DNA of 64,000 nt, taken from positions 2,294,001 through 2,358,000 of the forward strand of contig JAMWBK010000006.1 in the NCBI GenBank assembly GCA_029953675.1, in the 5' to 3' direction. The notes under the pieces were generated by a model. The model was not told the origin of the DNA, searched no databases, and saw only the letters and a list, made by a program, of their open reading frames with translations. The number at the start of each line of letters is the position of its first letter. The first letter of the stretch is position 1. The stretch is from Rhodosorus marinus CCMP1338. Lineage: Eukaryota > Plantae > Rhodophyta. Below, one piece after another: positions 2,662 through 59,906 of the stretch. The position numbers were made by a program, and so were the translations under genes.

Positions 2662-4212
2662 TCATTGCTCTGGGTCATCCACAGCTACTGTGCAGAATTG
2701 ATTCTTAGATGCTCGTGTCTTGTCCAAGTACTTTAGATCATGGGAACTCGTCTCCCCTGGTCTGGTCGTGATGTCCCACTTTTGACAACCGTACATTTCC
2801 CTGAACTGGCCAGTTATTCCAGCAAGCACCAGGAAAAAAACAAACGGAATAAAGCAAACAATTCCCAGCAGAATCCACGGATAGGAAAGTCTCTGTTGAC
2901 GTGGAATGGTCGCGTACGAGTAGAGCAACTCCACTGAGAAAGTTATGATGAACATCAAGAAAATAACGTTAGAAACGGTACCCTCGTGAACATGCAGCGT
3001 TGATTTTCCGTCAACTTCCAAGTAACGACGAAGAGCTGTAGCAGCGGTGATGACGATCGAAGTCGGCATCAGATAGTACCAAACTTCCCGCATCAAAAAC
3101 ATCACGGTTACGCCCAGCTTTTGCTGAAGACTCGTTTTGCGACTTCTCATGAGCCCTCCGAAATGCTTGTAAGAACACTGGAACCATCCTTGTGCCCACC
3201 GAAGTCGCTGTCGCCAAAGATCGTGCACAGTTTCCGGCACGAGCTCAGAGGACAGAACGGATGGCTCGTGTCTTATGATACCACCGAGCAGTAAGGCTCT
3301 GAGGCTAACGTCGATGTCTTCAGTCAGCATGTCCTTATCGAAAAGAAGCTGAGACAGGTAGCTCTTTCTCCAAAATCCATTGGAACCACCAAAGACGCCG
3401 AAGCCTCTCCAAAACGAACCCCCACAATGGTGAACGTTGTACACAAGCCCTTCCTCGATTGACACGATTCTCGTAAGCATATTTCGGTCCTGATTTCTCA
3501 CAAAGCTGGAGCCCTGTAGGGCACAGGTCTCTGGCGTCCACAAGCGAGCCACCTCGCTCAGGGAGTTGGACATCGGCAGGTGATCAGCGTCAAGAATACC
3601 TACGACGTTACCCGAGGAGAGACCTACGCCATAGTTTACGTTTTCAGCTTTTGACGACGATGTGTTACATCGTTTAACTACTAGTTCTCTCTCTGAAGAA
3701 CCGACTTTAACGACTTTTTCCCTCGACTTCAATCGATATTCAAGTTGCTGTACTTCTGTCTTCAATTCTTCGGATGGTGTATAGTTGTAGACCACGACAA
3801 CTTGGTAGTCCGCATCATAGTCCATCCGGTACATTAACTGATCGATCGTGTTCTCGATAATATCAACCTCGTTCGGCAAATAGCAAGGAATGACTACCGA
3901 AAGCCTTATGTCTTCGGGTTTGCCTCCCACTTCAACGTCCTCGTCTAGGACCTTCCCCATAAGCAAGCTGCTCTTCTCATCAGGTTTCGACCCTGGCGGG
4001 GACTTCCAGCGGCTCATATCCAGAGCGCAGATGAAATCAACAATACTCAGCGACGTGATAAGCGCCAGGGTCCCAATAGACGTCCTGTTAAGCAAGTCAA
4101 TCAGCACCGCCGGCGCCGACATCGTTAGCACGCATACAGGAATCACCAACAATACGACAAATAATATGGAAATTTCTGCCCATGGGGGCATCTCTGTTCC
4201 CTTCCTCCACAT
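2662..4212 (-). CDS. Processive family-2 glycosyltransferase (cellulose-synthase-like), intronless, 516 aa, multi-pass membrane protein
   Basis: N-terminal hydrophobic helices, then IPCYLPNE, SKAEN, GILDADH (DxD), LTEDID (TED) and QRLRWAQG (QxxRW), followed by C-terminal TM helices. This is the D,D,D,QxxRW signature of processive GT2 enzymes. Confidence 0.9.
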   Translation of the reverse strand: MWRKGTEMPPWAEISILFVVLLVIPVCVLTMSAPAVLIDLLNRTSIGTLALITSLSIVDFICALDMSRWKSPPGSKPDEKSSLLMGKVLDEDVEVGGKPEDIRLSVVIPCYLPNEVDIIENTIDQLMYRMDYDADYQVVVVYNYTPSEELKTEVQQLEYRLKSREKVVKVGSSERELVVKRCNTSSSKAENVNYGVGLSSGNVVGILDADHLPMSNSLSEVARLWTPETCALQGSSFVRNQDRNMLTRIVSIEEGLVYNVHHCGGSFWRGFGVFGGSNGFWRKSYLSQLLFDKDMLTEDIDVSLRALLLGGIIRHEPSVLSSELVPETVHDLWRQRLRWAQGWFQCSYKHFGGLMRSRKTSLQQKLGVTVMFLMREVWYYLMPTSIVITAATALRRYLEVDGKSTLHVHEGTVSNVIFLMFIITFSVELLYSYATIPRQQRLSYPWILLGIVCFIPFVFFLVLAGITGQFREMYGCQKWDITTRPGETSSHDLKYLDKTRASKNQFCTVAVDDPEQ

Positions 4213-6578
4213 CTCCCACTATCTGCTAACTCTTCATGAGCAACCTCTTCAATCAACCCCCTCAATCCCCAAAAATCCCGACCCCTACCTCCACCCTTTA
4301 TCCACCACACTCTACGCCTTTCAATTCACAGGTAAGCCAAGCTCTTAAAAACTCAACACCTCATCCCCTACTGCCCGCATCCCAACACAAAAATTTCACT
4401 GCCAACAACAATAAACTCACACCCTTGCCATCAGCTTCGACCCTGCTCTCCCATCTGCTCCTATTCCTAATCCTAATATGGCAAAATGGCACGCACGCAC
4501 AGGGAAAAAGAGGACAATAGTGTCACCCTGTTTATCATAATCCGAAGTGTCTCCCTCCCGCCATGTTCTCGGAAGCGGAAATATAACTACTCATTCTTCT
4601 CCCATTCATCCCTCCCATTCACTCCCGTTATCATCAACAACCGTAAATCGCCAATATTTCATATACAATTCCATTTATACATCAATCATTTTCAATGATC
4701 ACTGACCAACAATCACCGATTAGATTTTTAGATAATGATTGAGAAAAAGCCGCTCAACTGGGGAAGCTAGAATTTCAATAATGTTTAGTAGGCATTTTTC
4801 TCCGGGAAATTGGGAGGGGGTAGATGAAGGAATTTTACCGCATTGCCCAATCGCATCTAGTTTCTCCCCCCCTTTACGCCATCCAAAAAATTGCAGATAT
4901 TCGAATTATGTTTCATATTTTGAAGGTTTTCGTTTCCATTGTTCGAATCGAATGTGGGGGTTGGCAAAGGACGCGTTTCAAGCGGATATTTATTTCGTTG
5001 CGTTTTCCGGGTCAAAGCGCTAGTTGTCAAATTGTATTTGAATGGTAAAGTTTGTTCGGCCCATGGAACTGATCAGTCATACGAGATATCATTGGTTGGG
5101 ACATCCTCGATATCTCATATTATTTAAAAGAATTGTAAATAAACTGCTCAATAATATTAGTAAATTCATCAAAAATAGATCTTTCGTCGACGAAGGTCCT
5201 ATTGGTCAATATTCTAAACGGAATTCTTTGTTTCCGTCAACCTTATGAACACTGTAAATATGTCTCTCTATTTTCGAGAAAATTAGATCAACTTGCATAA
5301 AAGGGAAATTCAGTCTCGATGAATCATATAGATTGATATAGCCGTAATAATATTTTAATTCTGTAAGGTTCGATATCGAATATTTTTGTTTTCAATGGGG
5401 GAAGGGGACCGGGATTTGAGATTGCACCTGTTGCATGCATGGGCAAGGTGAGTCCAATCTTAAACATTTGGCACTGGCTCCTGGTTCTCCTAGGTCTTTG
5501 GCAATAGGCGCCTGGCCAGCCCCTATTCGTTGGTTCCATATCTGTCGAGATGGGAAAAGCAGGAATTCGATCAGGGAAGCATCGATCTTAGAGTATGGAA
5601 CCCCGAAGAGCAATCGTTTTTGTCGAATTAAGAACTAACTCCCTTAGAGACCGTAGACCCTAGTCGTGTATGTTTACAGTAGGAGAGGCGGCGAAGGGTT
5701 TGCTGCAATATTGTTCACATAAGCAGAAAAGTCAGTGTACGCAGACACAAGCGGAGTGTAAGTTCATGCAAAGGTGCTGATAGTAGAAGCAGAAGCCCTG
5801 GTCTTGGTGGCCCGGTTTTGACCTGAAGTCTATATTCTGAGGAGGTATTTCTTAAGCAGGAACCTTTCAGCCCCATCCACCCCGGCCAGATGTTTAGTTC
5901 GTGCGCTGGAGGGGAGCATCAAAATACAGGACCTTGATCAAATAGTGTTGGCCCACGGTTTGGACCCTTCTATCCCACCCGGTATCTACCTATCTCTATG
6001 CCATCGTAATAAATCCATCGTAGCTTCTATCTCAAACAAGGGGTGCTTCATCGCAAACCGCGGAAGGACCTTCAGCTGTGAACAACCCGGGCGAAGAACA
6101 TGGGCATAGGACTGCCACGGATGGTTGTTGTTTTCTTGTTTTTGAGCTTGCCAGTATTTGGATGATGACCTTAGTGTAGACGGGCGTAATCGAACAAACG
6201 CAACGCGCACACAAACATGCACCACTATTTCGGGCCAACACGACAAGCCACTACCCGTACTCGAAGACCGGCCATGTAAAACGCAAAAGCAAGAAATCGC
6301 GAAGTACCTGCCGGGTTCGAACTAAATACAACACTCGACAACTCGTGCTGCGATGTACAGGTTCCAGTAGTGATCCTATGTTGTCTTCATTAGTCCTTCT
6401 GAAAATTCAGATGGTTTCCTGATACTCTGTTCACTCTCACAACAGTGACGGAGGCCCCTCACTTGAAAACCACGTTGCTCCGAAACTTTGTAAAACGGAC
6501 AACTACACCCACAGATCATGTTCAAGAGCAAAGCAACAAGGTGGTATGAAAGAATCTCCAATCCCTCCTCTCTCCATA

Positions 6579-6729
6579 CTAAGATTCCAACGCCTCTTTA
6601 CGTGGATGGAGTCACGCAACTACCTTTCAGTATCCCGTAGTAACTGCTGCTCCATGTGCAGTCATCTGGGATACCTGAAAGGTAGTTGCGTGTAATTCCA
6701 TCCACGGAAAGCACGTGTTGGAATCTTAG
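6579..6729. ncRNA. Long imperfect inverted repeat / foldback hairpin, pre-miRNA-like
   Basis: The left arm 6579-6636 and the reverse complement of the right arm 6668-6729 share perfect blocks CTAAGATTCCAAC (13), CGTGGATGGA (10), CACGCAACTACCTTTCAG (18) and TATCCC (6), separated by small bulges. The loop holds a further ACTGC/GCAGT stem. The inverted repeat is certain; the ncRNA call is inference. Confidence 0.6.
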
Positions 6730-7139
6730 AACTTCTTCCCTATTCAGTACCAAACATCGTAGGACTCCCCCAGCGGCTTCTACTTATCTGCTCGGAACTT
6801 GTAGCCTACATGGAGCAAGTCAAGAGACAATCATGACGAGATTACAACATACCCAGGGTCTACACATTTAGCATCTAGTTTTCAAGACCATCATCGAACA
6901 AAAGTCTGTGCAACACTAAAAAGGTTACTCCATTCCTATGATGACCACGACCCACCGAATGTCTGCTATTATCGAAGCGGTATTCGCAGCGACCATCACA
7001 CGAGGGAAGAGATACGCTGAAGAGGATATTGTCGGGTTAAGAAGGGCAGGATGACCAGATTCCGCTGGGGGTATTGGAGGGAGATGTTGAGTTGTTGAAG
7101 ATCAACATTTCGGGTTTCTAGGAGATTGGTTGAAGGAGG

Positions 7140-7744
7140 ATGGGAAAAAAGGGCGGAGGAGGAGGAGGTGGCGGTGGTAAGGGGGGTAAAGGTGGAGGTG
7201 ATACGAAACTGAAGACATGCAACTTTGTGAAAGCGAGGCATATCCTGTGTGAAAAGCAAGGGAAAATCAATGAATGCTGGAAGGAGATGGGTGAGGCGTA
7301 TTTGGATGATGGTGACAAGATTCCCGGACCAAAGTTTGGAGAGGTGAGTAATTGATGGAGAGCTTGAGCACATTTGATGTTAGGCTTTTGGAATATGAGA
7401 CGATGGTGATTTAACTCGCTATCTTCTGCGCGAACGTTGGTCCGATTTTGACTTGTTTAGTATGCGATGAAGTATAGCGAGTGCAGCTCAGCGAAGAGCG
7501 GGGGAAACCTGGGATGGTTTCCTCGCGGCAAGATGGAGGGAAAATTTCAGGAGGTGGCATTCTCAACCGAAGTCGGCAAGGTTGCACCCCCTTTCAAGGG
7601 CGCCAATGGTAAGTTACTGGACGCCCAATAGGCTGCGACGTATCCTATACCCTATCGTCGGCTCCACGAAACCCTGACCACTTAACAACACGATCTCCCT
7701 GACCAGGTTGGCATATTCTTCTAGTCGAAGGCCGCAGAGCATAG
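7140..7744 (+). CDS. PIN4: Parvulin-type peptidyl-prolyl cis-trans isomerase PIN4/Par14; exons 7140-7343, 7461-7608, 7707-7744
   Basis: Gly/Lys-rich N-terminus, then VKARHILCEKQGKI, YSECSSAKSGGNLGWFPRGKMEGKFQEVAF and GWHILLVEGRRA. Splice sites are canonical. Confidence 0.95.
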
Positions 7745-17311: not shown

Positions 17312-20300
17312 TCATCCTGCGGTTTTTTTCGCGTCATCTTCTCGAGCAGCCTGCTTCGCAGAATCCGACCCAGAGGGTGCTGTATCGGGTTCTAGAGGTG
17401 CCTCACTTCTGTCCGCAACTCGTCCCGATGCCTCAACAGCTTCCTCGAATTTCCCTGGACTAAGGTCACTGCCATTCTGCACGTCTCGTGAGACTGGGTC
17501 AGTCGGTTCGCTTTGCACCTCGGATTCAGGGTGCGCCTCGGGTTCGGGCTCCACTTCCGAATCAGGGTGCGCCTCAGAATCGGGTTGCTCTTCTGTTCTG
17601 TTTTGTGGGGTCTCGGCTTCGTCGGTATCGGCTTGTTCGTCGGCATCGGCTTGTTCGTCGGCATCGGCTTGTTCGTCGACGGCATCGGCTTGTTCGTCGG
17701 CATCGGCTTGTTCGTCGGCATCGGCTTGTTCGTCGGCATCGGCTTGTTCGTCGGCATCGGCTTGTTCGTCGGCATCGGCTTGTTCGTCGACTGCATCGGC
17801 TTGTTCGTCGACTGCATCGGCTTGTTCGTCGACTGCATCGGCTTGTTCGTCGACTGCATCGGCTTGTTCGTCGACTGCATCGGCTTGTTCGTCGACTGCA
17901 TCGGCTTGTTCGTCAGCATCGGCTTGTGCGTCAGCACCGGCTTGTTCGTCAGCACCGGCTTGTTCGTCGGCATCGGCTTGTTCGTAGACATCGGCTTGCT
18001 CGTCGGCAGCGGCTTTCTCGTCGGCATCGGCTTGCTCGTCGGCATCGGTTTGTTCGCCGGCATCGGCTTGTACGTCGTCATCGGCTTGTTCGTCGGCATC
18101 GGCTTGGTCGTCGACATCGGCTTGTTCGTCGGAAGCGGCTTGTCCGTCGGAATCGGCGTGTGCTTTGGTTGCATCAGCTTGCTCGTCGGAATCGGTTGGG
18201 GCTTTGGCATTTGCCTGAATTTCGGCAGCGGCTTGCGCTTCGGAATCAGACTCTTCTTCGCTCTGCATTTCCGAGTCTGGCTGAACTTCAGAATCGAGTC
18301 GCGCCTCGGGTTCCAGTCTGACCTCGGGTCTCGCTTCAGATTTTTCTTCTCCTTCCAAGGCAGCATCACCCTGAACCTGCTCCGCTTTCTTTGTCTCTGG
18401 TGACCCAACCTCAGCCTTGATCGACGGGTCCTTCTCAGCATCGACCTTCTCCTGAATGTCCTGGTGTACCTCTTGGCCTGCGGTTAGCGTTCCCAATGGC
18501 CTGTCCGCATCTGTGTATTCTTGATTTACGGGTTTCTCTGAAACTTCAAGCTCCATCGGACTTGCTGAAGTTCCCCTTTCTTCAGCAGCCGAGTCTACTT
18601 GATCCGAGGGTCCAGGAGAATCTTGTGCGGGTTCGTGATCTACGTCCTCCGACCTGATATCGACTTCAGACACCTTTGCGGAAACATCAGGCCCTTCCGC
18701 TCCTCCGTCAACGTCCATAGCATCACCCTTATCCTCTTGCACACCACCAGCATCCTTCGCAACCTCCTCGTTCCCGTCTTCCCCACTTCCGTCCTCCTCA
18801 TCAGCGGCTTCCGCTTGTGCCTCTCCTCCATCCGACATACTCTCCGCCGGCCTGAGCTCCTTCTGAAGCTCATCAGCAACGCTACTTTTCTCGTCATATT
18901 TGGTGGCCTCCTTACCCTCCGTCTGATCCTCTGCCTTACTAGCAGCCATAGGCTCTTCAGATTCGTCCTCTTCCGCACCCTCTTCGCTGTCTTGAGTATT
19001 AGCACCCACCGCAACATCAACATCCATTCCTTCCTCCGCTGCTCCTTCATCTACAGTCTTTTCTTCGTTTCCCGGTGCTGAGCTCACGTTCTGATTCTTT
19101 TCCTCCCGCTTCTCCCCATGACCGGTTCTATTTTCCCCAATCTCTGGTCCCACTTTCTCAGCATCTGCTGGTTCACCGGGCACTGGTGACTCCCTTAACG
19201 GCTCCTTTGGAGGAGTCACTGACAGATTGCTAGCTCCCGCAGCGCTATCAACCGCATCCGGTTGTCCCACACTGTCTGAGAGCATCTGCTGATTCTCTGA
19301 AGAGCTGGGATTTGGTAGATCTTGCGTATCCACTTGCATTTTGTCATTGGAGCCTGCCGCCTCTCTCTCCCCTAGTGCCTGCTCCTCCGCTTTCCTATCG
19401 CCCGTTGCTCCTACTTGTCCCTCTTCGCTTCGGTCTTTGTCATCTTTAACCTCTTCGGTTCCGGACTGCGAAGGAGCCATACTGCCATCTTCCTCACCGT
19501 ACACATCCATTGGCTCGGGCTTTTCTCCTTGCTCCTTGGGGACGTCCTCGTTGGAGCCTTCTTCTTTCGTACCAATTGTGTCCTCATTTGAATGTGCATC
19601 CTGCGCTGAGTCTGTACCGCTCATGTCCTTTTTCGCAGTGCCTTTGTCGGATCCCTCGAGGTCCTGCCTGGCTTTTTCGAGTTCATGGGCAGCGAACCCA
19701 ACAAGGTATTTGTCGTAAGTTGCTGACAAGCTTGCTTTGATATCATCATCTGACGATTCTGCGCTGTCGTACATGGCCTTCCACACCAGAGCTCGGCTCT
19801 CGGGGCTCAACTCGGCAACCGGCCCACCGTCTTGTTTCCTGATCGCGAGATACAGTGGGTAGAGATCTAGCTCTGAGCTCTGCTTCCCGTTTCCCGCCTC
19901 AAGTTTCAGCCCACGAAGGTTGAGAAACTCTCTCAAGGTGCTTCTGAAGGATTCCTCATCAGCGGACGAAGATTCTGGAGTACTCGAGTCCTGATCCAGT
20001 TCCTGTTCTTTCTTCTGTTTTGTAGTAGCCCCGTCCCCCGTCCCACCCCTTTCGCGAGGAAGTTTCTTAGCTGCGATCTTCGTCTTGTGGATAGTGGTTC
20101 TCAGCTCATCCCACTTTTCCGCACGGCGAACCTTAGCCACAGCTACTTGGACGTTGTGGGCGAGGCTCTCGCTCTTCAGGCCCAGACCCTTGTGCGAGCA
20201 TAGAAAACAGCGATAATCGCTCCAAATCACGTCCAACGAGTCTCCATCATCCAAACCAAGACAATAGGCGTGTGAACGGCATCTACAAATACAACACTCC

Positions 20301-21289
20301 ACAAGAGTCCCGACCTTCCTGCTCGAGCCACAAGCGCACTTCACAATTTCTGAAGCCATGCCCTGACCCGACACTTGCTTGTCCTTGACACTCAGTTGCC
20401 TCCGTTTACCTCTACGTCCGGGTTCTGTCCAAGAGTTGACGTACGCAGCCGAGTCAAAGAGCGGGCGATTGTACTCCCCTGTGGAGTCTCCGGGATCAAC
20501 AGCATTCCGCGTCCTTTTCCGCTGTGAAAGAATCTGATGTGAGGCGACATCCAAAGAAGCCGGATCGAGCTCAATTCGATCCTTTTCGACCGGAGGCAGT
20601 CGAAGAACAGGACTCGGCGGAGTCTTGCAGTCAAAATCTGTTTCTTTAGCTCCGAGTTGGACCTCGAGATCGTCCACTTGCAATCTCATGATCCGTTCAT
20701 CATCAAACAAGACGTCGTGTTCGCCATCCGCATCATTGTATCCCAAAATCAGCCCCCATCGGTAGTAGAAGTGGTCACCCTGCTGATCAAAAAATCTCAC
20801 TTTAAGCGTATGTCCGACGAGATCCTTTGCCGCACGTAATGATTTTCCAGCGGGAAATTCTTTGGCCTTTCTTTCTCTTTCGTAACTGAGTAGTACAGAC
20901 TGGTAAAGCTTTGCCAGACGATGTGAAATTGAAGTCAACGTTTTGCTGAGGCCAAGGGCCGTCCTCACTTGCGACCAGCTTCTCGATTCTTCGACGTTCC
21001 TGTACCCACCGCGATTGACATACACTTCAGTGAAAAGACTCGGCAAAAACCTGGACAAGCTCATAGTACCGATTCGACCCGGGAGATCCGATACAATGAT
21101 CCCAAGTTCCCGATTATAAGACAAAATGTCATTGTACAGATCCATCTCCGGATCCAGGGAGTAGGTTACCCCTTGCAATTCTTTGGAGCAATATACGGAA
21201 CCTTCCAAGGCACCCCGACGGCCAGCAGACCGAGCCCTACGCCCTGATCTATCCACCGGTTTCTCATCCGCATCTCCTATCCCACCCAT
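17312..21289 (-). CDS. Chromatin protein: ARID, Tudor-like, PHD finger, second ARID-like domain and ~800-aa acidic disordered tail; intronless, 1325 aa
   Basis: ARID-like SLFTEVYVNRGGYRNVEESRSWSQVRTALGL...RLAKLYQSVLLSYE. Tudor-like LVGHTLKVRF...WGLILGYNDADGEHDVLFDD. PHD C4HC3 VKCACG...ECCICRCRSHAYC...YRCFLC. Second ARID-like ELDLYPLYLAIRKQDGG...TYDKYLVGF. Confidence 0.85.
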   Translation of the reverse strand: MGGIGDADEKPVDRSGRRARSAGRRGALEGSVYCSKELQGVTYSLDPEMDLYNDILSYNRELGIIVSDLPGRIGTMSLSRFLPSLFTEVYVNRGGYRNVEESRSWSQVRTALGLSKTLTSISHRLAKLYQSVLLSYERERKAKEFPAGKSLRAAKDLVGHTLKVRFFDQQGDHFYYRWGLILGYNDADGEHDVLFDDERIMRLQVDDLEVQLGAKETDFDCKTPPSPVLRLPPVEKDRIELDPASLDVASHQILSQRKRTRNAVDPGDSTGEYNRPLFDSAAYVNSWTEPGRRGKRRQLSVKDKQVSGQGMASEIVKCACGSSRKVGTLVECCICRCRSHAYCLGLDDGDSLDVIWSDYRCFLCSHKGLGLKSESLAHNVQVAVAKVRRAEKWDELRTTIHKTKIAAKKLPRERGGTGDGATTKQKKEQELDQDSSTPESSSADEESFRSTLREFLNLRGLKLEAGNGKQSSELDLYPLYLAIRKQDGGPVAELSPESRALVWKAMYDSAESSDDDIKASLSATYDKYLVGFAAHELEKARQDLEGSDKGTAKKDMSGTDSAQDAHSNEDTIGTKEEGSNEDVPKEQGEKPEPMDVYGEEDGSMAPSQSGTEEVKDDKDRSEEGQVGATGDRKAEEQALGEREAAGSNDKMQVDTQDLPNPSSSENQQMLSDSVGQPDAVDSAAGASNLSVTPPKEPLRESPVPGEPADAEKVGPEIGENRTGHGEKREEKNQNVSSAPGNEEKTVDEGAAEEGMDVDVAVGANTQDSEEGAEEDESEEPMAASKAEDQTEGKEATKYDEKSSVADELQKELRPAESMSDGGEAQAEAADEEDGSGEDGNEEVAKDAGGVQEDKGDAMDVDGGAEGPDVSAKVSEVDIRSEDVDHEPAQDSPGPSDQVDSAAEERGTSASPMELEVSEKPVNQEYTDADRPLGTLTAGQEVHQDIQEKVDAEKDPSIKAEVGSPETKKAEQVQGDAALEGEEKSEARPEVRLEPEARLDSEVQPDSEMQSEEESDSEAQAAAEIQANAKAPTDSDEQADATKAHADSDGQAASDEQADVDDQADADEQADDDVQADAGEQTDADEQADADEKAAADEQADVYEQADADEQAGADEQAGADAQADADEQADAVDEQADAVDEQADAVDEQADAVDEQADAVDEQADAVDEQADADEQADADEQADADEQADADEQADADEQADAVDEQADADEQADADEQADTDEAETPQNRTEEQPDSEAHPDSEVEPEPEAHPESEVQSEPTDPVSRDVQNGSDLSPGKFEEAVEASGRVADRSEAPLEPDTAPSGSDSAKQAAREDDAKKTAG
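17615..18195 (-). repeat. Coding minisatellite of 18-nt and 21-nt units encoding DEQADA / DEQADAV (about 27 units, degenerate at the edges)
   Basis: Plus-strand units are CTTGTTCGTCGGCATCGG and CTTGTTCGTCGACTGCATCGG, in tandem without spacers. Confidence 0.97.
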
Positions 21290-28184: not shown

Positions 28185-31100
28185 ATGGTAAGGATTCAAA
28201 TGACTTTGTTTATCGGTGCTAGTTGGTCATGCGTTGCTTACTCCATAGTCTTTTGTTGGTTACTAGGGTATTCCCAAGTTTTATCGATGGCTGTCAGATC
28301 GGTACCCGCTGATCAGTCAGACTTTGGACGAGTCTCACGAGTTTGATAACTTCTATTTGGACATGAACGGCATTATTCATCAATGCACTCATCCGAACGA
28401 TGACGAGGTCGTCGAAACAGATTTTGAGGCAATGCTTCGCGCAATATTTAATTATACTGATAGGTGAGAAGAAACGTCTTAGTGGATGGATCATAAGAAG
28501 TCCTGGTTGTTCATCGAGCTCCTCAACGTATTTTGACCGCGCAAACGTGTTCTGTCCCTCCACGACAAAACCCAGACTTTATCGGATTGTCCGTCCAAGA
28601 AAGCTCCTGTTTTTGGCTATAGATGGTGTCGCGCCTAGAGCGAAGATGAACCAGCAGCGGAGCAGACGTTTTCGCAGTGCCAAGGACAATGAACGTGTTC
28701 TTGCAGAGGTGCGCATACTTGCCATCCCCCCCTGTGATTGGACCCGTAGGAGTCGAAATGACAAGATTTCTGAAAACTTTAGTTGTGCTCTACCTTGGAT
28801 TGATGAAAAATAGGCGATTGCGAAGGGAAAGAGTGTTCCGAAAGAAAAACCGTTTGACTCCAACTGCATCACTCCTGGGACTCAGTTTATGCTCGAGCTT
28901 AGCAGAAAGTTCAAGGTAACCTGATTCTGAACGCTCAAATTTTCCCCTTGTCTTTGCGATGAAGTTCGTGCTCACCCTTTCCGCGATGAATTTGCTTTTT
29001 GCTAGTCATGGATCAACTACAAGATGACGACAGATCCCGCCTGGCAGCAAGGTTGCGAAGTTGTTTTCTCAGGATCTGAGGTGACTTACACGCGCCAGTG
29101 GCATGCTGATCTTAAACGTCTTGTTTTCGTAAGCTGCGAGGGTCACCAGAGCTAATCGCCTTGTCTGCATTAAACATTGGATCAGGTTCCGGGCGAAGGC
29201 GAGCATAAGATTATGGATTATATTCGGGACTGGAGGGCGTCAGATGACTGGATACCGACTAGGAAGCACTGTATGTACGGATTGGATGCGGATCTGATTA
29301 TGCTAGGGCTGGTGACTCATGAACCTCATTTCACTCTTCTGCGCGAGAGGATGAAGTGGAGGGGAGGTCGAAGAAGGTGCGCAGAATGCCGAATCTGGCC
29401 ACCCACTTCGGTTAGAGACCTTAGCGTTATTTTTGCTTACACTCCGCCGTTGTTGGTCCGAAAACGTGCAGAGTACCGGTGATGAAGGGGGACATGTCAG
29501 ACGCTGCGGAGTTTGAGCTTCTGGAAATATCACTGCTTAGGGACATGCTGTACCTCGAGTTTCGACCGCAGGGTACTCGAGCGCAGCCAAGACGTGGCTA
29601 CTCAGGATCCACTCAGCAGCCTCCTCTTAACGCGAAGAAGCTATCATTTAAATATGAAGCCATGCGAGTAGTAGACGATTTCGTGTTTATGTGCATGCTC
29701 GTGGGAAACGACTTTGTGCCGCATATTCCACATCTTGATATTGCCGAAGGAGCACTTAACTTAATGTTCAGATCGTATAAGGAGCTCATGCCTACCTGGG
29801 GTATGCCCCAATTCACCCCGGGGGGGAGGAGGGGTGGGGGGGAGGACTGAAGTGAGATTCTAAAATTTGGTATTTTTTCCTGCTTACAGGAGGCTATCTC
29901 ACCGATTTGCACCGGCTGCATCCCCAACGTCTTGAGAGCTTTTTCGAAGTCATTTCGGAACCAGAGGAGGACTTTTTCCACCAGCGGGGTCTGGAGGAGC
30001 AACAACCGATGTACGAAGCGAGCAAGTACAGGTCGTTCTATTACAAGTCAAAGCTGGACATAGATGCTGATGATGAACAGAGCATGCGCCGGCTGGTTCT
30101 CAACTTCGTCGAGGGTCTCCACTGGGTCTTGCAGTACTACCACAATGGATGCCCGAGCTGGAATTGGTAAGAGGCAGATGCCTGAAGACAATTTAGATTG
30201 GGATGCAAGATTACCCACATTTCTCGTCAAACGGCATGTCACCTCTGCTTCCGGTTGCAGGTACTATGAAACCTTTTACGGCCCTCTTGCCAGCGATCTG
30301 AGAGACCTAAAATCGTACCGCGTACGGTTCCGAAAAGGAAAGCCTTTCAGGCCTCTAACTCAGCTTCTAGCGGTACGTTGACTCGACAGCGGGGGACCCC
30401 GGCTCGAGCTGGGTTGATATGAGTATTTGACTCACTGATGGATACAACGCCGAAACAGGTTTTACCTCCAGAGAGCTCGGACTTCCTGCCGAAGCCCTTC
30501 AAGGAGCTAATGACTATGCCCGAGTCGGAAGTGTTGGAATTCTACCCGAAGGAATTCCAAATTGACTTCAACGGAAAGAAAAATGCATGGGAAGCAGTTG
30601 TCTTGATTCCGTTCATCGATGAAAAGCGACTGCAGTCGGCAGTGAGGCAGATAGACCCATCAAGGATTAGCCCTGAGGAAATGAAGAGAAATCGACTCGG
30701 TGAGTTTGCGAGTCTCGTCCATTGTGGTCCGTGTGCAACAACTTCTTTCTAACAAAGCAACGATTTCAACGTTTTTTTACCTTCTCCGTAGGCAAGGAAC
30801 GCAGGTTTTTGCCCGAGAACTATCCACGATGTACAAGAAAAATCTCACCCGTGCGTCCGGAGATGAGAAACCCGCTGAGAACAGAGAGGTACGGAATCCT
30901 GTTGTCTCTAGCGATAGCAACGTCGACAGCATCCATTCTGAAGCTGAACGCGGTGATTTTCTTACAGGACGAAGAATAAATCCTCCAAGATTCGCTCAAA
31001 GGCCAAGCAAATCGAGGAACAAAACAAACCTCCTTTCAACAGCAAATCTCGACCAAAAAATCGACCAACGGCACAATCCAAGGACGATGCTGGGAGAGAA

Positions 31101-57248: not shown

Positions 57249-58271
57249 TCAAGATATTGAACAGCACCTCTTTCTGCGGGCTCGTTGCTCTGCTTGCGCG
57301 GCGCTCTGCTGTTCGACATAGGCGGGCGGGGGACCCTGAATTACCCGAAGATTGTTCATATTCTCCTCATCCTCGCCTACCGTAGGATGCCTAGTGCTAT
57401 GCTTCCATTCACCGTCGACAATAAACTTGAACTCGTGCGTGCCAGCTGGAACCGGGGTTACAACGGACCACATGCCTCCTAATGCAACGGTGAATGTTTC
57501 TAGTGGTCAGGACATAAACCAAATTTCGAGATTGCACCATTTGAACGAATAGCTCCTCATTACCTCCTTCATGATACATTTGAATCGGCATCCAGCCATT
57601 CCAGGAGCCAGCGAGTTTTGCATCCTTTTCCGCTCCGTCTGCCCATACGAACTCCGTTTTCACGAGCACTTCGCCTTCTCCTAGAGGGTTCTGCGCTGTA
57701 TGCTCGCCTTGTACCATCGGAATACTGAACAAAGTTCCAATAGAGCAGTATGAACAGTCAGTGATAAGCAGAAGAATACGTCCTCATGCATGATCAGTTG
57801 TTCAGGGCGTTGGCACGTACTGAGGTCTTTGCTCCTACACATTTCCCAACAAGATATCCCACAGGAAAGAACGTGGAGTTTAGAAACAAGAACGATCGCG
57901 GGCCGTCATCGTCCCCTCACGTCATCGTACGGTAGAATCAATCAGGGGCAATCAGGGGCAATCAGGGGCAAAAAAAACATGAGTTGCTAGCTTACCACTG
58001 GTCCAGTATCCTCGTACTCCTCGAGCATTTCCCCGTCCCCTTCCTCCTCGTACTCTTCCTCATCGTCATCGTACTCATCGTCATCATCATATCCATCATC
58101 CTCCTCTACAACCTTGGGAGCAGGTGGTGGAGGGACTTGTACAGGCAGAGGTGGAGGGGCAGGTGCGTCAGCGCCCACGGGCATTGGCGGAGGCTTTGGC
58201 ACGACGCCACCTACTGGTGTCGCTTGAGCACCCGGTGGCCGCGGTGGGGGCGGAGGCGCTACACTCGACAT
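57249..58271 (-). CDS. Proline-rich/acidic protein with an AMPK-beta-type carbohydrate-binding module (CBM48) and C-terminal polybasic-CCSIS; exons 58271-57996, 57834-57821, 57724-57564, 57478-57249
   Basis: CBM48 motif TEFVWADG...LAGSWNGW...WSVVTPVPAGTHEFKFIVDGEW. The ORF ends RARRKRCCSIS-stop. All junctions are GT-AG and in phase. Confidence 0.82.
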
Positions 58272-59906
58272 CGATGCCTTCCAATCCAAAGTAGGAAATT
58301 TCTCCGATTCCCCTAAAAATTAATGCAACGCTCCGCCTTTCGGTACCCCAGATCGATTTTTCGCCTTTCAAAACTAGGACAGACCTGCTTGAGGCGACTC
58401 CTCATCAAACTGCGCACGATCGTGCTAAGCAACTTCGTCAGCTACCGCAAACACCCTCAACTTGCAACTCCGGGGCAATTCAAGGTCACCCCCGCCAAGC
58501 ACAGACACAGGGTCTACAACGCGCACCAACTATCATCAGGAGAATAATGATTGACTGGTTCCATACAATCCAAGAACTTTGAGGAAAACAACAAGCACGA
58601 GGGCAATCGCGAGGTTTTTAGGAAAAACAGATTTCCTTTAGGTCTCTTCTGCCCCAATTATGATCTCTAGGAATGACTAATATTGACCTTTTCGATGGTG
58701 TTGGTATTGCTTATGGACTTACTTCTTTCATCATCCAGGGGTTGATGGATTTCATCATAAGGAGTATTTAAAGTTTTTATTCAAGTATTCAAAGAAAGAC
58801 TTGCTTCATGGTTGGAAGCTCACTGTGAGTCTTTGCCTGCCAATGTCAAGTTTGTCTTCATGGCAACCCCTTGAATTCTCTTCCAGCCTCATTAATTAGG
58901 ATGATCGGCGCTTTAATTAGGAAAGATTGAATATCGAAGCCTTCTCAATATTGTTGTTACTTTATCAAGCCCTCGAAATTCTACTGTTTTGTTTTCTTTT
59001 TTAATAGTGAAGAAATCTGAAGCACCCTCCCCCCCCCCCCGCCGGGGATTTTGAACTCGAATTGACTGTGAATCGTTCGTTTTCTAGAGACCGTACTACC
59101 CCTCCCTCAATGGTTTTTGAATTCAACTTCTCACCTGATTGCATAGAATTTTTGATCGAAACAACACAAGAACAGGACGCAGTTTTCATTCATTCGATGC
59201 TTACATCCGAATGGGACACGTGGAAATAAACAGTTTGTTTTTGGGACTATCGTGGACTACATACATCTATGATTGGGTATTTTTTCATCGACTGGTTGAT
59301 GATTGGGTAAATTCGAATATTTCGCGTGGGCACGAGGTCTAGCCCGATAGCCCGAAAAGCAGGGGGGAAACGGCGCTCTATTACCTGAACCGCTTAGCAA
59401 AGTAGGGGCGGAAGGAGTCCCTCTGCTTGGCTTCAGAAGACGTGGGATTAATGAATTCCGCAATCCATGTTTTAGGTCGCTACACTACATGATCCCTCGC
59501 GTTGACGCATCGCTTTTCCAAGATGACGCAAGTGCAAGTAATGATTCATCTGAAAGCCAGGCGTCAACCTCGCTGAGTTGAGCACCGATGTCCTCCCACT
59601 ACTTATCTTTCTACAAGGCTATGCATTTGAAACCCGCTCAGCTCCTATCCGAAGCGTGGAAACCCAAAACCCGCAAGCCCAAACAAATCTACTGCGCATC
59701 TCCTGTAACGGATTCAGTACGGAGGTGCTCGTTACAATCGGCATTAGTTTCCGATCGGGAGGGCAGGTCGGCAGGAATTTGCTGAGGGAGGCTGTCGAGC
59801 GTATCCTTGTAAAAGCGTTGTAGGGCTTTTTATTGTTTTGCTCTGCATCTGAAGCGTTTGCACATCTCGACTTTGACTCTGTTCGGCGATTCTGCGGCGT
59901 CACGGT

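Follow-up and report, generated by a model that had tools for sequence, protein, structure and literature searches.

Palindromic MITEs of the Tc1/mariner-Stowaway type, such as plant Stowaway and human MADE1, are non-coding elements that are palindromic over nearly their whole length and for which a size of about 150 bp is typical. They measure 100–250 bp, consist of two long inverted arms, and often yield miRNA-like hairpins; MITE-derived hairpins are a known source of miRNAs. The MIRNA precursors of plants and green algae, including those of Chlamydomonas and young Arabidopsis MIRNA genes, are unbranched, bulged stem-loops of about 150 nt with intergenic locations, and in algae such as Chlamydomonas they are often long near-perfect hairpins. 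In a third kind of described locus, the hpRNA endo-siRNA loci known from animals and plants, transcription of a genomic inverted repeat yields an intramolecular dsRNA, usually with a stem of several hundred base pairs. The existence of true miRNAs in red algae is unsettled; the published sets depend for the most part on resemblance to plant miRNAs and have yet to pass stringent filters. Red algae are so far missing from the lineages in which stringent surveys recognise validated miRNAs (PMC5381526). The groups known to satisfy such criteria are animals, land plants, chlorophytes, slime moulds and brown algae.

The 151-nt foldback described here, from the unicellular red alga Rhodosorus marinus, has traits of each of these systems. 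Like the palindromic MITEs it is non-coding, has a short centre between two long inverted arms, is found in intergenic DNA close to genes and may be flanked by a TA duplication; unlike them, it has no second copy in the 71 kb searched, is not AT-rich, and comes from a genome whose repeat table lists no Tc1/mariner transposase. It matches the shape, size and intergenic location of plant and green-algal MIRNA precursors, and its candidate 21-nt duplexes stay within the MIRNA limits on mismatches and bulges, but it belongs to no conserved family, has no identified target and sits in a lineage without stringently validated miRNAs. As in hpRNA loci, a genomic inverted repeat could give a stem with room for more than one Dicer product, although that stem is about 58 bp rather than several hundred. 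Our best guess, held with somewhat less than even confidence, is that the hairpin may be a stranded, TA-flanked, MITE-like foldback insertion.

The nuclear genome of R. marinus CCMP1338 (Stylonematophyceae) comprises 31.2 Mb and 8,392 genes, with abundant NUMTs (PMC10250338). We analysed a 64,000-nt stretch of the nuclear contig JAMWBK010000006.1 (assembly GCA_029953675.1), referred to below as the window, in which 2,294,000 is added to a window coordinate to give the contig position. Together with 7.3 kb to its left (L001), the window makes up the 71 kb searched for repeats, or 0.2% of the 31-Mb genome. The foldback occupies 6579–6729 (contig position ~2,300,579–2,300,729) and is an imperfect inverted repeat around a short spacer, delimited irrespective of strand by RNA folds and by an inverted self-match. 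On the + strand, its 5′ arm (6579–6636, 58 nt; placed by alignment against the reverse complement of the 3′ arm) and its 3′ arm (6668–6729, 62 nt; placed by the MFE structure and the arm alignment) enclose a terminal loop of 31 nt (6637–6667, + strand). The arms pair through perfect blocks of 13 bp (6579–6591 with 6717–6729), 10 bp (6601–6610 with 6697–6706), 18 bp (6613–6630 with 6675–6692) and 6 bp (6631–6636 with 6668–6673), and the stem holds a further 4-bp block, CTTT/AAAG. The longest of these, the 18-bp block CACGCAACTACCTTTCAG on the + strand, was returned by an inverted-repeat finder and is the core that a preliminary description of this DNA had proposed for a miRNA/miRNA* duplex. Irregularities in the 3′ arm comprise a 1-nt bulge at 6674, a 2-nt bulge at 6693–6694 and one extra base near 6712. 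In the arm alignment 54 of 62 columns are identical, with four substitutions and three indels totalling 4 nt. The arm lengths and the 13-, 10-, 18- and 6-bp blocks given in the preliminary description were borne out when the sequence was read and aligned, and the MFE structure reproduced the 31-nt loop with its inner stem of 5 bp (6643–6647 with 6658–6662).

The preliminary description had also proposed RNA folding of both strands as a check, and each strand gave one long bulged hairpin at a z-score of about −15. The + strand folds at −94.3 kcal/mol, compared with a shuffle mean of −35.9 (sd 3.7, z −15.6; 0 of 200 shuffles as good), and the − strand at −91.0 kcal/mol (z −15.1). The same stem formed when the hairpin was folded in a 351-nt context. 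A 150-nt sliding fold along the entire + strand of the window had a mean of −34.2 (sd 8.9) and reached its extreme at the hairpin locus, and self-BLAST of the 71 kb returned the inverted self-match of the hairpin (E=1.4e-24) as the sole match outside a coding tandem repeat. The foldback is thus confirmed as real and statistically extreme. The runner-up of the sliding fold, 58141–58290 (−74.9 kcal/mol), was considered as a second hairpin and rejected: it is GC- and Pro-rich coding sequence, and with a z-score of only −3 and a Pro/Asp/Glu-rich ORF (57987–58289, − strand) running antisense to it, its energy is attributed to composition and not to a hairpin gene.

Fold-back chimeras occur in Nanopore data, and the assembly was made from Nanopore reads with Illumina polishing, so that the hairpin could in principle be an assembly artefact, for example a fold-back chimeric read. 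We give this explanation hardly any weight. Such chimeras usually extend over kilobases and lie at contig ends, whereas this hairpin measures 151 nt, has imperfect arms and is separated by ~172 kb from the closer end of its contig, which is 2.47 Mb long.

The hairpin lies within a 2.9-kb unannotated, divergent intergenic gap between a glycosyltransferase gene on the left and a Par14 gene on the right. Its placement in a gene-free interval, as in the preliminary description, agrees with the GenBank annotation, which has no calls between the glycosyltransferase and the rotamase gene. The accompanying claim that no ORF covers it also held, in that only noise-length ORFs of 40–61 aa cross 6579–6729; their peptides were absent from the protein collection searched, as were those of nearby control ORFs. 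The nearest downstream gene encodes a Par14/PIN4 parvulin, for which we built a 129 aa hand model from ORFs and splice sites (7140–7744, + strand; exons 7140–7343, 7461–7608 and 7707–7744). The locus gives Rotamase Pfam matches, and homologues from Pyropia and Porphyra are 76% identical. The deposited model, NDN08_000951, has 80 aa, starts at an internal Met (7287) and appears truncated; starting instead from the ATG at 7140, which is in frame, supplies a Gly/Lys-rich N-terminus of the kind typical of Par14. This ATG lies 410 nt downstream of the end of the hairpin.

On the other side, to the left, 2.4 kb separate the hairpin from the start of a divergently oriented, single-exon family-2 glycosyltransferase gene (2662–4191, − strand; from ORF and annotation), whose ORF product is identical to a protein recorded on JAMWBK010000006.1. 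With the exception of one relative from a JGI sample at 56%, the top matches to this protein come from actinobacteria and Closterium at 33–41% identity, and the gene is a candidate for an old horizontal transfer. The sole contig carrying a relative of it (L003) is 1.6 kb long and has no flanks. In the closest available Par14 contig (L002; JGI sample 3300016811), which comes from a related alga and has 83% amino-acid identity, Par14 lies between a bZIP gene on its upstream side and a mitochondrial-carrier gene on its downstream side. This contig shares no synteny with the window and has no such foldback at its Par14 locus, and no remnant of the bZIP gene was found in the window. At 1603–2055 of that contig the Par14 frame is broken by an unspliced GTGAGT...AG intron; since the contig also joins three genes, it represents genomic or pre-mRNA sequence. 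Its Par14 protein also bears an MMETSP source name.

A position this close to the Par14 ATG, in a divergent intergenic region, would also suit a cis-acting DNA palindrome in a shared promoter, acting as a cruciform or as paired transcription-factor sites for Par14 and/or the glycosyltransferase gene. As single-stranded DNA the hairpin folds strongly (−54.8 kcal/mol, z −14.7), and it contains two ACGT-core motifs, a G-box/E-box CACGTG at 6710–6715 in the 3′ arm and ACGTGG at 6600–6605 in the 5′ arm. Each motif is present in one arm only, however, and such a hexamer is expected by chance at the few-percent level. Regulatory palindromes normally span 10–30 bp, against 150 bp here, and the related Par14 locus described above, with its different upstream gene, is without such an element. 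We consider a cis-acting role very improbable. Both motifs coincide with positions at which the arms differ.

The hairpin is unique within the 71 kb. Neither blastn-short of the whole element nor repeat finders detected a second copy there, even a partial one, and within the window the 18-mer core with up to 3 mismatches occurred only at its two arm positions, and the 13-mer terminus with mismatches only in the element itself. No complementary site that might serve as a target was found elsewhere in the 71 kb. Among JGI metagenome and metatranscriptome contigs the 18-mer core gave six single-arm matches only, which we regard as chance because their flanks fail to match, and no counterpart of the hairpin was found in IMG/VR (two patterns) or in GTDB genomes. 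The hairpin is unannotated and belongs to no described RNA family: Rfam 15 gave no match anywhere in the window at the gathering threshold, and a tRNA/tmRNA search of the window was likewise negative. A permissive Rfam search over 4200–7200 returned mir-2062 as its sole match, with a score of 20.5 bits where the gathering threshold is 90 (E=0.66). Membership was rejected, and the match is a chance one to the generic hairpin shape that the family has in common with 6608–6698.

Self-BLAST of the 71 kb revealed no dispersed repeat of any kind. The published figure for the genome is 15% repeats (9% of it CRE/SLACS-type LINEs), from which it follows that repeats are strongly clustered elsewhere. 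The 71 kb represent 0.2% of the genome, a sample so small that our searches could easily have missed a family even with a few hundred members. In the published RepeatMasker table for the assembly, 6,757 interspersed repeats, 186 bp long on average, are left unclassified; this is the bin in which MITE families would be filed, and it could hide a related element. The same table lists 0 Tc1/mariner, 0 Harbinger and 0 piggyBac elements, and 35 hAT fragments.

According to the preliminary description the flanks give no target-site duplication, which would speak against a MITE. This absence is not established, and the argument does not hold, since the palindrome itself may contain a TA/TA duplication. 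The palindrome ends are C-TA-AGATTCC...GGAATCT-TA-G, or in context ...CCATA C TA AGATTCCAAC ... GTTGGAATCT TA G AACTT.... Direct reading of these ends gives a candidate left copy of the duplication at 6580–6581 and a candidate right copy at 6727–6728, neither assignable to a strand. As TA is its own reverse complement, its duplication would extend the apparent palindrome by 2 bp and may thereby be concealed within it. Outside the palindrome there is no direct repeat of any length. TA makes up only 4.4% of dinucleotides in the window, and its occurrence on both sides, just inside the outermost C:G pair, is therefore a modest hint of a duplication and not proof. The same property weighs against the MITE reading, since a duplication that is itself palindromic looks the same as a longer inverted repeat, and the C:G pair at the outer ends has to be taken as coincidence. 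To our knowledge, none of the canonical mariner or Stowaway termini is similar to the terminus AGATTCCAAC... of this element. Insertion into a pyrimidine tract was also considered from the composition of the flanks and rejected as not significant, the pyrimidine-richness of the joined flanks being at the unremarkable 85th percentile.

Several further features speak for a MITE. The element has terminal inverted repeats, perfect over 13 bp, is shorter than ~800 bp and has no coding capacity; complementarity stops sharply on both sides. The substitutions between the arms show no significant bias towards RNA pairing and are accompanied by three indels, as neutral decay predicts, and the absence of an Rfam family is in keeping with the same interpretation. 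On the opposing side, no autonomous partner or transposase superfamily is apparent in the published repeat table, the 71 kb contain no second copy, and the GC content of 47.7% is near the genome average of 49%. The structure of the hairpin, its statistical extremity, its position, its uniqueness within the 71 kb and its lack of a known RNA family are direct results; a transposon origin, a TA duplication and any transcription or dicing are inferred.

Under the MITE reading, the element would be a palindromic, non-autonomous transposon insert of 145 bp (6582–6726) flanked by duplicated TA. A TA-targeting, cut-and-paste transposase supplied in trans would have recognised the terminal inverted repeats and inserted it into the 2.9-kb region between the divergent glycosyltransferase and Par14 genes, and the arms would since have drifted to about 87% identity. 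The copy would now be stranded, as the present-day genome has no recognisable transposase of this kind. The one activity that can be predicted for it is physical: RNA transcribed across it would form a nearly perfect ~58-bp stem, from which a Dicer-type RNase III would be expected to cut siRNA- or miRNA-like duplexes; the + strand, running towards Par14, would be the slightly better folder. The insertion would at most provide raw material for a proto-miRNA or hairpin-RNA locus.

A single copy in the 71 kb searched, no conventional target-site duplication outside the palindrome, a GC content at genome background and arm substitutions and indels that follow no compensatory pattern would be compatible with a neutral local inverted duplication, as would the near absence of class II transposons from the published repeat table. 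Here a template switch or fold-back repair would have copied ~60 bp in reverse and left a 31-nt spacer; the resulting structure would be single-copy, would never have been mobile, and would have no function other than occasional secondary-structure effects. Typical template-switch quasi-palindromes are smaller, however, and arms of ~60 nt with a clean 31-nt spacer exceed them. Moreover, neither arm is visibly continuous in composition with its flank, and the TA/TA could be explained only by chance, at about 5–10%. An origin of this kind seems to us unlikely.

A third interpretation takes the hairpin for a hairpin-RNA or young MIRNA-like gene. A + strand transcript, either independent or read-through, would fold into the 58-bp stem and be diced and loaded into Argonaute, and would silence complementary RNAs in trans; Dicer-like cleavage would release one or two duplexes of 21–22 nt, for example from 6601–6636 paired with 6668–6706. 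The foldback itself suggests as much, with 151 nt and an MFE of −94.3 kcal/mol (z −15.6) in the long near-perfect form of Chlamydomonas precursors. It also lies in an unannotated interval upstream of, and on the same strand as, an expressed housekeeping gene, Par14. We compared it with the miRNA criteria of Axtell & Meyers 2018 and of Tarver/Taylor, in the form in which they are quoted in PMC5381526. As quoted there, a precursor is a single hairpin of at most 300 nt with an unbranched stem, and the foldback is one continuous unbranched stem of 151 nt. For the duplex, the same quotation requires 15 or more paired nt and allows up to 5 mismatched positions and up to 3 nt in asymmetric bulges, but no inner secondary stem. 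The 21-mers starting at 6601–6617 are fully paired on the 5′ arm and face one or two bulged bases in the 3′ arm, which places these candidate duplexes inside the structural limits quoted for plants and brown algae. Beyond structure, the criteria call for a locus that is no repeat or transposon copy, for a host with Dicer-like and Argonaute proteins, and for reads of both miRNA and miRNA* that have precise 5′ ends and 2-nt 3′ overhangs and fall mainly into one duplex instead of a diffuse ladder.

With respect to machinery, both a DCL and an AGO are encoded in a second red alga, Chondrus crispus (PMC12026948, a review), which lends the hairpin-RNA interpretation some plausibility. Within the window neither Dicer nor Argonaute is encoded, and a literature search found no paper linking Rhodosorus with Argonaute. 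The + strand carries five G:U pairs, the − strand has one, and the fold of the + strand is the better by 3.3 kcal/mol, but this strand bias stems from two substitutions (transitions) and is not significant. Of the four arm substitutions, two keep a G:U pair on the + strand and two break the pair; as these latter two and the three indels break pairing, there is no sign of selection for structure. The lack of an Rfam match and of a complementary site elsewhere in the 71 kb also count against such a gene. So do two points from PMC5381526, namely that red-algal miRNA reports have not so far passed stringent criteria and that stems with room for more than two duplexes tend towards heterogeneous siRNAs, which the criteria exclude. 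Overall, we regard a hairpin-RNA or MIRNA-like gene as possible but doubtful. Its strictly canonical subset, a miRNA that has defined targets and a single precise duplex, is improbable, and we are no less sceptical of a genuine, precisely processed miRNA gene in a stylonematophycean red alga, which may in turn stem from a palindromic transposon insertion. We know of no small-RNA library for R. marinus, the listed run SRR19576337 being mRNA RNA-seq.

All of the evidence testable from sequence alone fits both readings put forward in the preliminary description, a Dicer substrate giving a miRNA and a decayed MITE, and cannot tell them apart. Since miRNAs are known to arise from MITE-derived hairpins, the readings of its origin and a small-RNA outcome are not mutually exclusive. 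A single clean, strong hairpin such as this, in a red-algal genome that is compact and well assembled, lends itself to a direct test. Were the miRNA reading true, this would be the first red-algal miRNA locus able to meet stringent criteria. A MITE would be an ordinary result, yet it would add a class II-type element to a genome annotated with almost none.

The remainder of the window is occupied by housekeeping genes (Tic110, PDCD2, ARID, NifU, XRN, VMA21, PhyH and Hsp70), among which there is no transposon. The XRN-family 5′–3′ exoribonuclease is represented by an exon at 28400–28813 (+ strand); the enzyme is ubiquitous and is no evidence for an RNAi pathway. A near-perfect 30-nt palindrome, AATAGATCTTTCGTCGACGAAGGTCCTATT, is present at 5174–5203, in the same intergenic gap as the hairpin and 1.4 kb to its left. 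Finally, ~45 tandem copies of an 18-nt unit were observed at 17505–18296, inside a 1,325-aa ARID-domain ORF (17312–21289, − strand), where the array constitutes a 6-residue coding repeat.
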